Assembly (NCBI RefSeq): GCF_000142905.1
Contig: NW_013657671.1
Span: 434,001 to 498,000, forward strand
Reading direction: 5' to 3'
Length of the DNA: 64,000 nt
Source of the DNA: Thecamonas trahens ATCC 50062
Lineage: Eukaryota; Protista; Apusomonadida
Positions within the stretch are counted from its first letter, which is position 1. The number at the start of each line of letters is the position of its first letter. Of this stretch, positions 15,484-21,358 are shown piece after piece. The notes beneath the pieces were generated by a model. That model made no database searches. It saw only the letters and a program-made list of their open reading frames with translations, and was not told where the DNA came from. Both the position numbers and the translations under genes were made by a program.

Positions 15484-16241
15484 GACGGGCGAGTTTGGGG
15501 AACAATGAAAATATTTCTCACGCGGCGTCGGCACGCGTGCGGACTGAGGCCACGGAGCGACAAAGGGCAATAGTGGAGGATATACAGGGTTCCCGGTAAT
15601 AGGCTTGGACTCGGACGGTAGGTAAACGCTTGTATAATGCTATGCAGGGAGTAACGGGACCGGGGACTTTCTGTGGATAGACGATAGAGGCCGTGGAACA
15701 AAGGGGAAGACCAAGTCGGTGGCACGTGCGGAGAGAGATATGCGGGGCCTACTACCGCAGTCCCGCAGCATCGAATACAGACAGTGGAGAAGGAGAGGAC
15801 TACAGGGTCGACGAGGGCCGTTATCGCATTGTGCTTTGGTTGTAGATCGGGCTTGGATTGGGTGCCAGACCGGAGCTCGGCCTCCTGGACAGAAGCCGTG
15901 GCTTGGCGGGCTTCCGGCCGGGGTTCTGGCCCGAGGCTGGCTCGACGAGTGAACGCATGCAATGGCAGACCAGGACAAGGAATTTGACTTTGAGCATGGT
16001 GCGATGGGGCGGATTGATAGGCCCCATGTTGGGAGCCCGCACATATGCCCAGGAGCATGCTCCAGGCTCTCGAGTACTCTGGTCTCAAGACCAAGCAAGG
16101 ACGCTGATGGTTCGCGGCCGGTGGCCCGGTGCCACGCAGCACTCGTTGGGCCGGCCAACCACCAACCAACCCACAGGCCACCGGTCGCCACTCGCCACTC
16201 ACCGACACCAGTTGCCACCACTCGTCACCAGCCAGCACATC

Positions 16242-19200
16242 ATGTCGACCTGCACGTATGCAACCACGGGGGCAAACTTCAAGTACCAGGTACGAGACCT
16301 TCCCCACCCACCCATCCTCTCCACACATGTCCATGCCAATAGCTCTACCGCCCCCCAACCCCCCCCCCCCCCCCCACCCCCCACCCCCCCCTCTCGTAAC
16401 CGGCCCCTTCCCTCTGTCTACCTCTGCCCAGCTCTGTCTTTCTTTCCATTGGTTTTTCTTCCGTTCCCCCCGCGACTTTCCACCTCCTCCCACCAACNNN
16501 NNNNNNNNNNNNNNNNNNNNNNNNNNNNNNNNNNNNNNNNNNNNNNNNNNNNNNNNNNNNNNNNNNNNNNNNNNNNNNNNNNNNNNNNNNNNNNNNNNNN
16601 NNNNNNNNNNNNNNNNNNNNNNNNNNNNNNNNNNNNNNNNNNNNNNNNNNNNNNNNNNNNNNNNNNNNNNNNNNNNNNNNNNNNNNNNNNNNACCCCCCC
16701 CCCACCACACACACTCCATCCCCCACAAACCAGCCCATCTCCTTCCCCTTTCCCCTTCCTTCCCCTACCAGCATTCCTACCTCCCCCCCCCCTCTCGCCC
16801 TGGCAGAAGCCAGCCGAATAGCTGAAAAATCGAATCGAACAAAGCCGGCCCCCATCGCCCTCCCCTCCTTCTCCCCCCACACCCGCAGACTCACACATTG
16901 ATGGACTTGGAGGGGATACAGGAGTGGTACGAGTGCGCTACGTGTGGGATGAACAACGGGTCTGGTGTGTGTGCCGTGTGCGCTATGCAGTGCCACCGCG
17001 GGCACAACCTGTCGGCGCCCAAGCACTCCAAGTTCTACTGCGATTGTGGGGCCGGCGGGTGCCAAGCCATGTCTGGCGGGAAGAAAAAGACCAAGAAGGT
17101 GCTGAAGGTCGCAAAGCGGGCACCGGCAAAGCAGCAGTTGCAGCAGCAGCCGCTGGCACTGCGGCAGGTGCAGCAGATGCAGCAGATGGCGGCGCAGCAG
17201 CAGAGCCTGGCAGCGCCGATGGCCCAGATGCAGCAGCAGCTGGCGCGCGGGCAGCAGAGCTCGGCGGCGACGGCCAAGCGGTCGGGCGTGTCGTACGAGC
17301 CGCGGCCGATGCAACAGGCTGCGCTGCGGGCGGTGAGCCGGGTGGCGGATGCGTCGGCGGTGCCGCGTGCACGGTCGTACGTGCCGAACGACCTGCGCGT
17401 GGACGTTAACTCGCCGGTGATCCGGCTGCCGCCCGGGTACTTTGTGCATGTGCTGGACACCAACTCGAACGTGACGCGGGTGCACCAGGGCCCGGCGACG
17501 CTGACGACGATGGACCACGAGCAGATTGTGCTTGGCCCGCGGGCAATGATCGTTGTTCCACCTGCACACTACTGCGTGGTGGCGGATCCTGTGGTCCGCG
17601 ACGACGCCGGTGAGCCAGTGGTCGAGGACGGGCAGTTCAAGGTTGCATTTGGCGAGCGCAAGGTTGTGGTAAGCGGCGAGCCGTTCCTGTTGTACCCGGG
17701 CGAGTCGATGGCGAGCGGGGTGACACCGCTGTTTGTGGTGCCCGAAGGCTCTGCGCTGCGGCTGCGGTCGGACCGCGAGTTTACCGACGGCGAGGGCGTG
17801 GTGCGGCCTGCGGGCTCGGAGTGGTATGTCCGCGGCCCGCAGACGTACACGCCGCTTGTCGAGGCGACGCCTGTGGAGCTTGTGTACGCGGTTCCACTCG
17901 AGCCGACGCAGGCGCTGCGGCTGGCAGCGCGGTCGAACACGGTCGACGCGGGCGGCAAGGCGCGGTCGACTGGCGAGGAATGGCTTGTCCGCAACGAGTT
18001 CAGCTACCTGCCTGGCGTGGAGGAGATTGTGCGTGGCATTGTGGATCCGATTGTGCTCTCGCCGACGCAGGCACTGCACATGCGGGCGACGCAGTCGTGC
18101 ACCGATGGGCTGGGCGTGGCGCGTAAGGCCGGCTCGCAATGGCTGCTGACGCGGGCCGACGCGGCGGCTTACATTCCGGGCGTGTTTGAGCAGGTTGTGG
18201 GTGTTGTCGACGCCATTGTACTGATGGCGAACCAGTATGTGGTGGTGGTTGATCCGGTCGATGCCAACGGCGTGCCGCAGCTCGGGCGCGCCGAGGTCCG
18301 CCGCGGCGAGGCCTCGTTCTTCCTGCACCCGGGAGAGTCGCTCCACGACGGCATCCAGGAGGTGCAGGTCCTTGGCAAGCAAGAGGCGCTTCTCTGCCGG
18401 GCGACCGAGTCGTTTGAGGACGCCGGTGTGGCGGGCGCGGACGAGGCGGGTGCGTCGGGACCGATTGCGCGCGGTGCCGGTGACCGGTGGCTCGTCGAGG
18501 GTCCGTGCGAGTACCTCCCGCCTGTGTGCGTGCAGGTCCTCGACCGGCGGTCTGCCATTCCGCTCGACAAGAACGAGGGCATCTACGTCCGCGACTGCTC
18601 GTCCGGCGCGGTGCGGTCTGTGACTGGCTCGTCGTACCTGCTCCGCGAGAACGAGGAGCTGTGGGAGAAGGACCTTCCCGAGAGTGTGGAGCAGCTGCTT
18701 GTGCGCTACGGCGGCGCGGCGGCACGGGTTAAGCACCGTGTTGTCTCGTTCCGGGTCCCGCACAACGCGGTGGCGCAGATCTACGACTACCGGCGCAAGT
18801 CTGCGCGGCTTGTGTTTGGGCCAGGCATGGTGATGCTCGAGCCCGACGAGCAGTTTACGCAGCTGACGCTGTCGGGCGGCAAGCCGAAGCGGTCGGGCGC
18901 GATCCGCGACGTCATTCTCCGGCTCGGCCCGGACTACATGACCGACATTCTCAATGTGGAGACGTCGGACCACGCGCGACTCTCGCTCAAGCTCTCGTAC
19001 TCGTGGCACTTTGACGTCGACCCGGCGGACGAGTCGCCCGAGGGCCTGGCCAAGGCCCGGGCGCTGTTCTCGGTGCCGGACTTTGTTGGTGACGGCTGCA
19101 AGGCCATTGCCTCGCGGGTTCGTGGCGTTGTCGCCTCGATTCCGTTTGACCAGTTCCATCGTAACTCGGCAGCCATCATTGCCGAGGCCGTGTTTGGCAT

Positions 19201-19945
19201 CGAGCCGACGAGTGGCAACCTTCGGACCGAGCTCCGGCTGCCGAACAACAACCTGGTCATCGACGCCGTCGACGTGCAGACGGTGGAGCCGGTGGACAAG
19301 TCGACGCGCGACTCACTCATGCGCTCGGTCCAGAACGCCATCCAGGACACGACTGACGCCGTCGAGGCCGAGGCCACCAACAAGGCGTCGCAGAAGGAGC
19401 AGCAGGCCATGGGTGAGCTGCAGCGGCAGAAGATCCTCGACGACGCCAAGATCGAGGAGGCCCGCCAGAAGCTCCTCGAGCTGCAGGCCGACTCGCGCGC
19501 CATCATGACTTCCGGTTCGGCCAAGGCTGAGGCCGAGGCCCGCGCCACCGCCCAGAAGATCACTGCCACCGCAGAGATCGAGCTTGCAGAGCTCCGCGCC
19601 ACCGCTGCCAACGCGCTCTCCGAGTCGGAACTCGCCCGCATGGCCGCCTACCAGCAGGCTGAAATCGACCACCAGCGCGCCCTCAACGACATTGAGGCCG
19701 AGCGCTCCGACAAGCTGGTCAACCTCGAGGTTTCCTCGTTCAAGACCACCGTCGACGCCATCGGAGCAGACGTCCTCACCACCATTGCGCAGGCCGGGCC
19801 CGAGATGCAGGCTCAGCTGCTGCAGTCGCTCAACCTCAAGACAACCGTCCTTACCGACGGCACCTCACCCATCAACCTCTTCAACTCGGCCAACGGCCTG
19901 GTCGGCGCCGCCTCGTCCGCCGCGTCGGCCTCGGCCTCGGGTTGA
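16242..19945 (+). CDS. MVP: Major vault protein with N-terminal UBR-box zinc finger and Gln-rich linker; exons 16242-16289, 16922-19945
   Basis: MVP repeats (VIRLPPGYFVHVLDTNSNVTR, GEPFLLYPGE, FFLHPGE, IPLDKNEGIYVRD), shoulder domain (LGPDYMTDILNVETSDHARLSL, FSVPDFVGDGCKAIASRVRG) and cap (AGPEMQAQLLQSL, TDGTSPINLF). The spliced N-terminus reads MSTCTYATTGANFKYQ/EWYECATC...CAVCAMQCHRGH...FYCDCG. Confidence 0.95.
16498..16692. other. Assembly gap (N run) inside the predicted first MVP intron
   Basis: Run of N. Confidence 0.99.
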
Positions 19946-20046
19946 AGTCCCAAATGAATGCCCCCGCCCCCCCCCCCCCCCCCCCCCCCCCACCACACAC
20001 ACACACACACACACACGCACACACACTTGTCTCCACACTCTGTGCC

Positions 20047-21358
20047 ATGTCGCGCCGAGCAGGAGCCACCCACCTCGCACAGATCTACGGTACCGAGAGG
20101 GACAAGTACGCTCTTGCCCCTGTCTCCCCGTCCCCTTCCCCCTTTCCCTGTGCCCCCGGCTCGCTCTCCACCCCTTACCCCTCACCCCCGTCCACGCAGG
20201 GTCAACTGCTCGTTCTACTTCAAGATGGGCGCTTGCCGCCATGGCGATACCTGCAATCGCACACACGTGGCTCCGGCCTTTTCGCAGACTGTCATGCTGC
20301 CCAACATGTACATCCCGCCCACCACCCGCGCACAGCTCGCGCGACCGCCTCATCGCAATCTCCCAGACCCACCTCCATCCTCCTCTGCACCCGCGTGCCC
20401 ACCTGCACCCGCATCAGCATCCACGACGACAGCACCCGGACTTGAGCCATCGACATCGGCGCCCGCTTCGGCAGCTGGCCAAGAGCCGATGGAGCTTGAG
20501 ACTGGCGCAGCAGGTCCCGCCAGCTCGGCACAAGCGACCGAACCGGTTCCGGTCGACGATGAGGCGCCTTTGGTGCCCGCACGGGTACCTGATGGCGATC
20601 TGAGTGCGCCACCGTCAGCCGACGAGCTGCAGGCACACTTTGACGACTTTTATGAGGATGTGTACCTTGAGATGGCAAAGTGCGGCAAGGTGCTCGAGCT
20701 CCACACCGCCGCCAACGCGACCGAGCACCTCGCAGGCAACGTGTACTGCATGTTTGCCACCGAAGACGCCGCAGATCGCGCCGTCGCCCTTTTCCATCGC
20801 CGCTTCTTTGCAGGCCGCCAGCTGAAGTGCGAGCTCTCGCCGGTCACCGACTTTGCCGAGGCCAAGTGCAAGGAGCTCAGCCTCGGCCGCTGCAACTATG
20901 GTGTCTCGTGTAACTTTCTCCACATGCGCTACCTCTCGCCTGACGCCGCCCTCGACGTCCACGGCCGCCGTCCACCTGCCACCTTTATCATCGGCGATGA
21001 CGATCCGCGCGGCCGCGGCGGTCACGATCGCGGTGGCTACGACCGTGGCGGCTACGACCGTGGCGGCTACGACCGTGGCGGCTACGACCGTGGCGGCTAC
21101 GATCGTGGTGGCTACGATCGTGGCGGTTACGACCGGAACCGCGACCGTGACCGTGACCGCGACCGTGACCGTCACAGGGGCTATGTTGGCGATCGCGGCA
21201 GCCACGGCGGTGGTGGCTACCGCGACCGCGACCGCGGCTCCCGTGGCGGCTACGATGACTACGGCGACCGCGGAGGTCGCGGTGATCATGACCGTGGAGA
21301 CCGTGGAGACCGTGGAGACCGTGGAGACCGGGGCGACCGGGGCTCTCACCGGTACTGA
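20047..21358 (+). CDS. U2AF1: U2AF small subunit (U2AF35); exons 20047-20105, 20200-21358
   Basis: HLAQIYGTERDK/VNCSFYFKMGACRHGDTCNRTH CCCH finger, UHM HFDDFYEDVYLEM...HLAGNVY, ELSPVTDFAEAKC...CNFLH second finger; phase-2 GT-AG intron. Confidence 0.93.

Follow-up and report, generated by a model that had tools for sequence, protein, structure and literature searches.

Why should a major vault protein (MVP), the shell protein of vaults, begin with a UBR box, a peptide-recognition finger from the world of N-degrons and protein quality control? The question is raised by a gene on the + strand, at 16242–16289 and 16922–19945 of a stretch of 64,000 nucleotides from the marine protist Thecamonas trahens ATCC 50062 (contig NW_013657671.1, positions 434,001 to 498,000; below, the window). 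We show that this one gene is expressed and spliced and encodes a UBR4-type box (residues 1–66), a linker of about 115 residues and a full-length MVP (residues 181–1023). An earlier note made from the letters of the window had reported such a fusion, and its observation of the fused gene is confirmed in every detail. Vaults were discovered about forty years ago. Their cellular role was still called elusive in 2026 (PMC13100048), and the fusion makes it possible to ask by specific experiments what vaults do.

One expressed and spliced gene

The gene consists of the following parts, numbered by position in the window:

16242–16289, + strand: exon 1, 16 codons, with the start codon, zinc ligand C4 and F13 (matching UBR4 Phe1671); RNA contigs run from 16228–16239 into the joint.
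16290–16921, + strand: intron, phase 0, GT..AG, C-rich, 632 bases, holding the assembly gap at 16498–16692.
16922–17071, + strand: exon-2 part of the UBR box (residues 17–66), from Pfam zf-UBR, PDB matches and conserved alignment columns.
17072–17413, + strand: linker (residues 67–180), from composition.
17414–18925, + strand: MVP repeat domains (residues 181–684), from four Pfam Vault matches, Vault_2, Vault_4 and Vault_3, and from an alignment that begins at residue 6 of solved MVPs.
18926–19297, + strand: MVP shoulder domain (residues 685–808), PF11978, 149 bits.
19298–19945, + strand: cap-helix and cap-ring region, short Ser/Ala tail and stop, from alignment to residue 853 of solved MVPs.

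The frame at 16898–19945 (+) holds 1015 codons without a stop and passes from a Cys/His-rich start through a Lys-rich patch and a Gln/Ala/Met-rich stretch into the MVP, ending with the stop codon at 19943–19945. A Cys/His domain, a Gln/Ala-rich linker and an MVP thus lie in one frame, as had been claimed, and the Pfam domains and the deposited protein agree. The latter, a 'major vault protein' of 1023 amino acids (XP_013760945.1, KNC56433.1, UniRef100_A0A0L0DY13), is 100% identical to the spliced model of the earlier note, and its precomputed Pfam annotation already includes zf-UBR.

The intron had been predicted to be of phase 0, with the donor GTACG starting at 16290 and the acceptor AG ending at 16921. 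We placed contigs from four metatranscriptome runs on positions 15600–20400; transcript ends are not deducible from these contigs. The predicted splice is borne out by RNA contigs of three runs (X1, X2 and X3) from one study, one contig in each run, which join 16286 to 16919. The cut fits equally well three bases to the right, where it reads 16289|16922 with GT..AG ends and 632 bases skipped. In run X1, one contig joins 16228–16286 to 16919–17223 with zero mismatches and another covers 17197–19882, and the two tile the gene from 16228 to 19882. A check for RNA over both the joint and the linker (17060–17400) had been suggested; the joint was seen, and the linker is covered by tiling only, the overlap of the two X1 contigs being 27 bases (17197–17223) within its CAG-rich part. 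Depth was zero in all runs over 15761–16082, 19947–20400 and the interior of the intron, which fits RNA and not contaminating DNA.

The frame of the start codon is open upstream to 15858 and contains four in-frame ATGs. We prefer the annotated start at 16242 because no RNA contig covers 15858–16241 and because exon 1 of the orthologue described below, one residue shorter than that of T. trahens, likewise opens with Met-Ser followed by the zinc-ligand Cys. A reading of the locus as a kinetoplastid trans-spliced gene starting from the ATG at 16901 was dropped, as exon 1 corresponds to the beginning of the UBR4 box and the Thecamonas protein is the database match. A scan for bacterial-type promoters and terminators, a method irrelevant to a eukaryote, found nothing. 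At five positions (17497, 17545, 18214, 18499 and 19516) the environmental transcripts differ from the reference by a single base; the differences are common to several runs, which suggests that a very close strain is present in the subsurface and seawater samples.

The same UBR–linker–MVP architecture is found in four metagenome proteins (P0002 and P0170–P0172; one cluster, 70% identity). A contig from a marine metagenome (L044, study PRJEB4352) contains the whole 5' end of the orthologous gene: exon 1 at 176–220 (15 codons; Cys, Thr, Phe ... Tyr .. Gln), a GTACGT donor, a phase 0 intron of 489 bases at 221–709, and an exon 2 that opens with Glu-Trp-Tyr-Glu-Cys, as in T. trahens. A second contig (L009) is truncated at its 5' end within the C-rich intron, and its acceptor falls on the identical codon boundary. 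Finger, linker and MVP body are thus all retained in the relative, and so are the short exon 1 and the position of the intron.

These contigs bear on whether the fusion could be an artefact, either of misassembly or of a gene model merging two genes. An assembly gap does lie upstream, and the RNA contigs break within the linker. The gap, an N run at 16498–16692, is nevertheless wholly inside the intron removed from the RNA, so that its true length cannot alter the frame, and the RNA contigs overlap across the break. One unbroken frame leads from the finger to the MVP stop in T. trahens, and the same continuous frame is found in L009 and L044. Since those two are independent assemblies from another species, misassembly between 16922 and 17400, named beforehand in the earlier note as a weak point, is ruled out, and we consider an artefact of either kind extremely improbable.

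Type, pocket and conservation of the box

The Pfam profile zf-UBR (PF02207, cut-off 25.2 bits) matches exon 2 alone with 33.8 bits and the full protein with 32.2 bits (profile positions 2–56). Exon 2 alone matches the profile from position 10 and the UBR4 crystal chain from residue 18; with exon 1 included, the match reaches profile position 2, residues 3–66 align to residues 1661–1727 of full-length UBR4, and PDB E-values improve, for example from 1.8e-13 to 6.7e-17 for 9qx1. We aligned 12 UBR-box segments taken from the matches of the finger search, nine from UBR4/BIG-type proteins and three from proteins with a C-terminal box, and found that the exon-1 peptide aligns with the conserved UBR4/BIG start CT[FY]..T...F..Q. 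An alignment that combined MVPs with short UBR proteins placed the second half of the box wrongly and was not used. The first zinc ligand of the box and its UBR4-specific Phe thus both come from exon 1.

The earlier note had described an intact UBR box of the UBR4/FBXO11 type, and our comparisons place it nearer the former. Among solved structures, the closest are the UBR4 box (8j9q, E-value 3e-15), the UBR-type domain-containing protein 9qx1 and plant BIG, followed by FBXO11 (9e-10), with UBR5 far behind; in bit scores, the finger matches UBR4 with 58.5 and FBXO11 with 40.5. All 11 zinc ligands (nine Cys and two His) are present: C4, C21, C24, C33, C36, C40, H41, H44, C56, C58 and C63. All except C4 belong to the exon-2 part, which also carries K50, F54, Y55 and D57. 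The finger shares with the UBR4/p600 box (8j9q, 8j9r; subfamily 2) the zinc pattern, the pocket equivalents and, at the second zinc, the Cys that this subfamily has where UBR1/2 have a His (PMC10687169). Its ending, CDCGA, had rightly been noted as differing from the CDCGD of UBR1/2; it is the form found in UBR4.

With Gln16 aligned to Gln1674, the UBR4 residues F1671, F1713, D1715 and K1708 correspond to F13 (in exon 1), Y55, D57 and K50, and the orthologue has a Tyr at the position of F13. In UBR4, Phe1671 is described as unique to that protein, F1671A and F1713A each abolish binding by the box, D1715 grips the N-terminal amino group, and K1708 sets charge selectivity at the second residue of the peptide (PMC10687169). 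The UBR4-type pocket is therefore preserved with conservative aromatic changes, which is suggestive of peptide binding. The setting of the box is quite different, as in UBR4 it lies inside a 570-kDa E4 ligase and here at the very N-terminus of a cage protein, without a hemi-RING or other ligase module and with a loop after CDCGA that is three residues shorter. A Pfam scan of the fusion protein gave only zf-UBR and MVP domains and no ubiquitin-ligase module (RING, HECT, hemi-RING or F-box), and the protein should therefore not be filed as an N-recognin E3 ligase.

We compared the three parts with the orthologue, using the ratio of nonsynonymous to synonymous substitution rates (dN/dS); the values are rough, as they come from one orthologue pair with a small sample and high dS:

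UBR box: 50 codons, dN/dS 0.16, 78% amino acid identity.
Linker: 107 codons, dN/dS 1.08, 38% amino acid identity.
MVP body: 830 codons, dN/dS 0.23, 77% amino acid identity.

Purifying selection acts on the finger as strongly as on the shell part. The linker consists of a Lys-rich patch (residues 67–87, net charge +9), a Gln/Ala/Met-rich stretch (88–131) and a Ser/Ala/Arg stretch (132–180); the orthologue keeps 38% of the residues and retains this character, the basic patch included. The linker behaves as a fast-evolving tether constrained in composition.

The vault shell and a possible receptor in its lumen

The MVP part was claimed to be complete, and we find it so. The Vault families score 176 (Vault), 86 (Vault_2), 97 (Vault_3) and 68 bits (Vault_4), with cut-offs of 23–29, the profile scan adds MVP_shoulder, and residues 181–1014 align in one stretch to residues 6–853 of the solved rat and human MVPs (9z4w, 7pkz; E-value 1e-244), collinear through the cap region. 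As the alignment runs end to end, no part of the shell protein is missing. The repeats, shoulder, cap helix and cap ring are those of canonical MVP (rat/human; 4v60, 4hl8, 7pkz, 9z4w). Compared with the solved MVPs, the two T. trahens paralogues and the 118 other MVP homologues listed by our searches (from animals, cyanobacteria and metagenomes; 19 in the sequence search), the fusion protein has 180 extra residues at its N-terminus.

Those two paralogues came from a count of MVP genes and of TEP1 and vPARP that had been proposed as a check. An MVP shoulder is encoded at three T. trahens loci: the fusion gene, C46 (P0005, 861 aa) and C40 (875 aa), and the proteins of the latter two start directly at repeat 1, without a finger. 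The count also yielded a vPARP-like gene (L045 2173–8415, +), a frame of 2080 codons with PARP catalytic, VIT and vWA domains in the order of vPARP (PARP4). Neither TROVE nor TEP1_N had a match in the T. trahens genome. The Rfam vault-RNA model matched neither this genome nor any control genome and is uninformative. A fourth MVP-like locus (L023 2886–4577, +) has Vault and Vault_2 repeats and starts directly at repeat 1; its frame stops after the repeats, and the shoulder domain was not found at the locus, which may encode a 'short MVP' form or contain an unresolved intron. Several divergent MVP paralogues per genome are also known from the vaults of T. brucei and Dictyostelium, and all three T. 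brucei paralogues enter one shell (PMC12547018). An added N-terminal domain is not reported for either, whereas in Thecamonas one of three full-length paralogues is specialised by fusion.

What could the finger do on such a protein? By the geometry published for N-terminal tags, the extension would lie in the lumen. Cryo-electron microscopy of vaults carrying tags shows N-terminal additions at the waist, within the particle, as the earlier note had said of N-terminal fusions; their density rises with tag size, and assembly is not blocked by GFP, a Cys-rich peptide or a Gag segment on the MVP N-terminus (PMC6680493); the T. brucei MVP tolerates an N-terminal eYFP (PMC12547018). The extension has a mass of 19.4 kDa, which for 78 copies comes to 1.5 MDa or, as computed, about 5% of the published lumen volume.

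Our leading reading, held tentatively and at somewhat below even odds, is that fingers assembled into vaults tether clients by their free N-terminus and capture them without ubiquitylation. The fusion protein would assemble into shells, either by itself or together with the canonical paralogues. Since MVP N-termini sit inside at the waist, up to 78 UBR boxes would be tethered flexibly in the cavity of each shell, and fewer if the canonical paralogues co-assemble. There the fingers would act as luminal receptors for the free N-terminal residue (aromatic or Arg) of proteins or peptides, the clients being either a broad N-degron-like class or one dedicated partner. As a ligase domain is absent, the outcome would be capture or sequestration and not ubiquitylation. 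Cargo selection or N-degron capture, as first proposed in the earlier note, is plausible on this analysis. A similar spatial logic is seen in UBR4 itself, where the box points into an internal substrate arena (PMC7618180). Engineered vaults of rat MVP likewise carry a module on the N-terminus (Cys-rich peptide, GFP or HIV-1 Gag; 6bp7, to which the MVP part of the fusion protein aligns from 6bp7 residue 77). The Thecamonas fusion differs from them in being natural, common to two species and under purifying selection, and in placing a peptide-recognition finger on a long flexible tether. Nature here parallels the vault engineers in placing a functional module on the lumen-facing MVP N-terminus, and the fusion may offer a ready-made design for self-loading vault nanoparticles.

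Several points weigh against this reading. The RNA contigs break in the CAG-rich linker, and the span from finger to repeats is in no single contig. One contig of run X3 (16809–16948, depth 3.9) is unspliced across the acceptor, which may reflect intron retention, pre-mRNA, DNA carry-over or an internal start, and because of it a minor isoform from the in-frame ATG at 16901, without C4 and F13, may also be made. In the pocket, UBR4 F1713 is replaced by Tyr and the loop carrying UBR4 D1721 is shorter. The affinity of the UBR4 box itself is weak for some peptides, in the hundreds of micromolar (PMC10687169), and the FBXO11 box has the fold without the pocket and does not bind N-degrons (PMC5606531). 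The closed shell raises the question of how clients would enter, and the fusion is found in two close lineages only.

The finger and linker could instead serve structure, bracing the waist, pairing half-vaults or aiding the N-terminal dimerisation of nascent chains, with no client bound. A Cys-rich engineered peptide is tolerated in the lumen at the N-terminus (PMC6680493), MVP chains dimerise by way of their N-termini on polyribosomes (PMC13100048), and the FBXO11 box can make zinc-mediated domain-swapped dimers (PMC5606531). The residues retained in the finger are exactly those of the UBR4 peptide pocket, though, including the UBR4-specific Phe, and both canonical paralogues manage without a finger. 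The fast-evolving linker of about 115 residues (dN/dS about 1), which parts the finger from repeat 1, is likelier to be a tether than a brace, and we find a structural role unlikely.

Less likely still is a nucleic-acid tether, in which the Lys-rich patch and the Gln-rich linker would bind RNA in the vault, with the finger as a folded cap, and replace the TEP1/vault-RNA module. The net charge of +9 over 21 residues, the basic patch in the orthologue and the failure to find the TROVE/TEP1_N signature in the genome are in keeping with this. It is the finger that is conserved, however, and the linker poorly so, and the vault-RNA search lends no weight, as the Rfam model matched no control genome. 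UBR boxes are not known to bind RNA. We put the probability of this role as low.

A wider view, which we consider doubtful, takes the fusion as a natural 'Rosetta stone' for vault function: vaults of this lineage would be lined with receptors for N-terminal residues, catching cleaved or orphan proteins by their N-degrons. Were that true, it would hint that vaults ancestrally served to sequester proteins for quality control, a task performed in other eukaryotes through separate, non-fused partners.

Rarity of the fusion and other uses of the box

How unusual is this architecture? Among the 120 MVP homologues listed in the profile search, PF02207 is found only in the T. trahens fusion and its orthologue P0002. 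A word-indexed search with residues 1–70 returned the same two proteins only. With the exon-2 box as query, an exhaustive HMMER search across 1.84 billion representatives gave 968 matches, and eight proteins (853–1485 aa) among the best 150 had no Vault domains; such a search can miss fusions, as the cluster of the query itself was absent, probably being represented by a finger-less MVP. The blind spots of the searches are the word index, the 50% clustering and the reach to the best 150 of 968 matches. A scan of JGI metagenomes found five UBR loci, none with an MVP, and no UBR-plus-Vault cluster was found in the ESM Atlas. Full-text searches of the literature, which paired major vault protein with either UBR or Thecamonas and also paired Thecamonas with vaults, did not find the fusion, and a 2013 paper on MVP evolution mentions neither apusomonads nor zinc fingers nor fusions. 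The suggestion that the fusion is undescribed holds in part: it is undescribed in the literature searched, whereas the protein and its Pfam matches are already deposited in public databases. In a tree of MVPs, the two proteins with the finger make up a clade of their own on a long stem; the deep branching is not resolved, and no origin of the fusion is claimed.

The closest relative of the finger in the T. trahens genome (62.5% over 64 residues) is the C-terminal UBR4-type box of a protein of 245 aa that contains a UBA domain as well (L024 5888–6625, −), the box being without an intron. This protein has a weak ubiquitin-like match (18.6 bits, under the cut-off of 25.4). Its ubiquitin-pathway context would suit a role outside the vault lumen, in which free or partly assembled fusion protein acts as an adaptor that connects MVP or vaults with the machinery of the ubiquitin pathway or of autophagy, with the finger docking, for example, onto another factor. 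Interaction of vaults with NBR1 and their removal through p62-dependent autophagy have also been reported (PMC13100048). Such an adaptor is at odds with an MVP body that is complete and conserved end to end and with the known geometry, which places N-terminal additions inside; nor did the Pfam scan find a ligase, UBA or LIR-type domain in the fusion protein. We regard a role of this kind as rather improbable.

Elsewhere, an N-terminal UBR box precedes a full serpin domain on a metagenome contig of 32% G+C (SDBS01088574.1; L042 73–1788, +), with Asp/Ser/Thr repeats flanking them. Beyond the fusion, the UBR4-type box is thus a mobile module, and the serpin protein is a further case of its use as an N-terminal add-on. 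Tandem UBR4-type boxes also occur, with 20 in P0020 (1423 aa) and five together with a RING finger in P0022 (469 aa) by Pfam, and P0021 (993 aa) has 14 stretches that match the box in the HMMER search only. As for the shell protein, full-length MVP homologues are present in many filamentous cyanobacteria and in one actinomycete bin (e.g., P0006, P0011, P0243 and P0256). They carry the annotation 'colicin uptake protein' and align with about 82% of the query at about 49% identity; in the tree they make up a tight clade.

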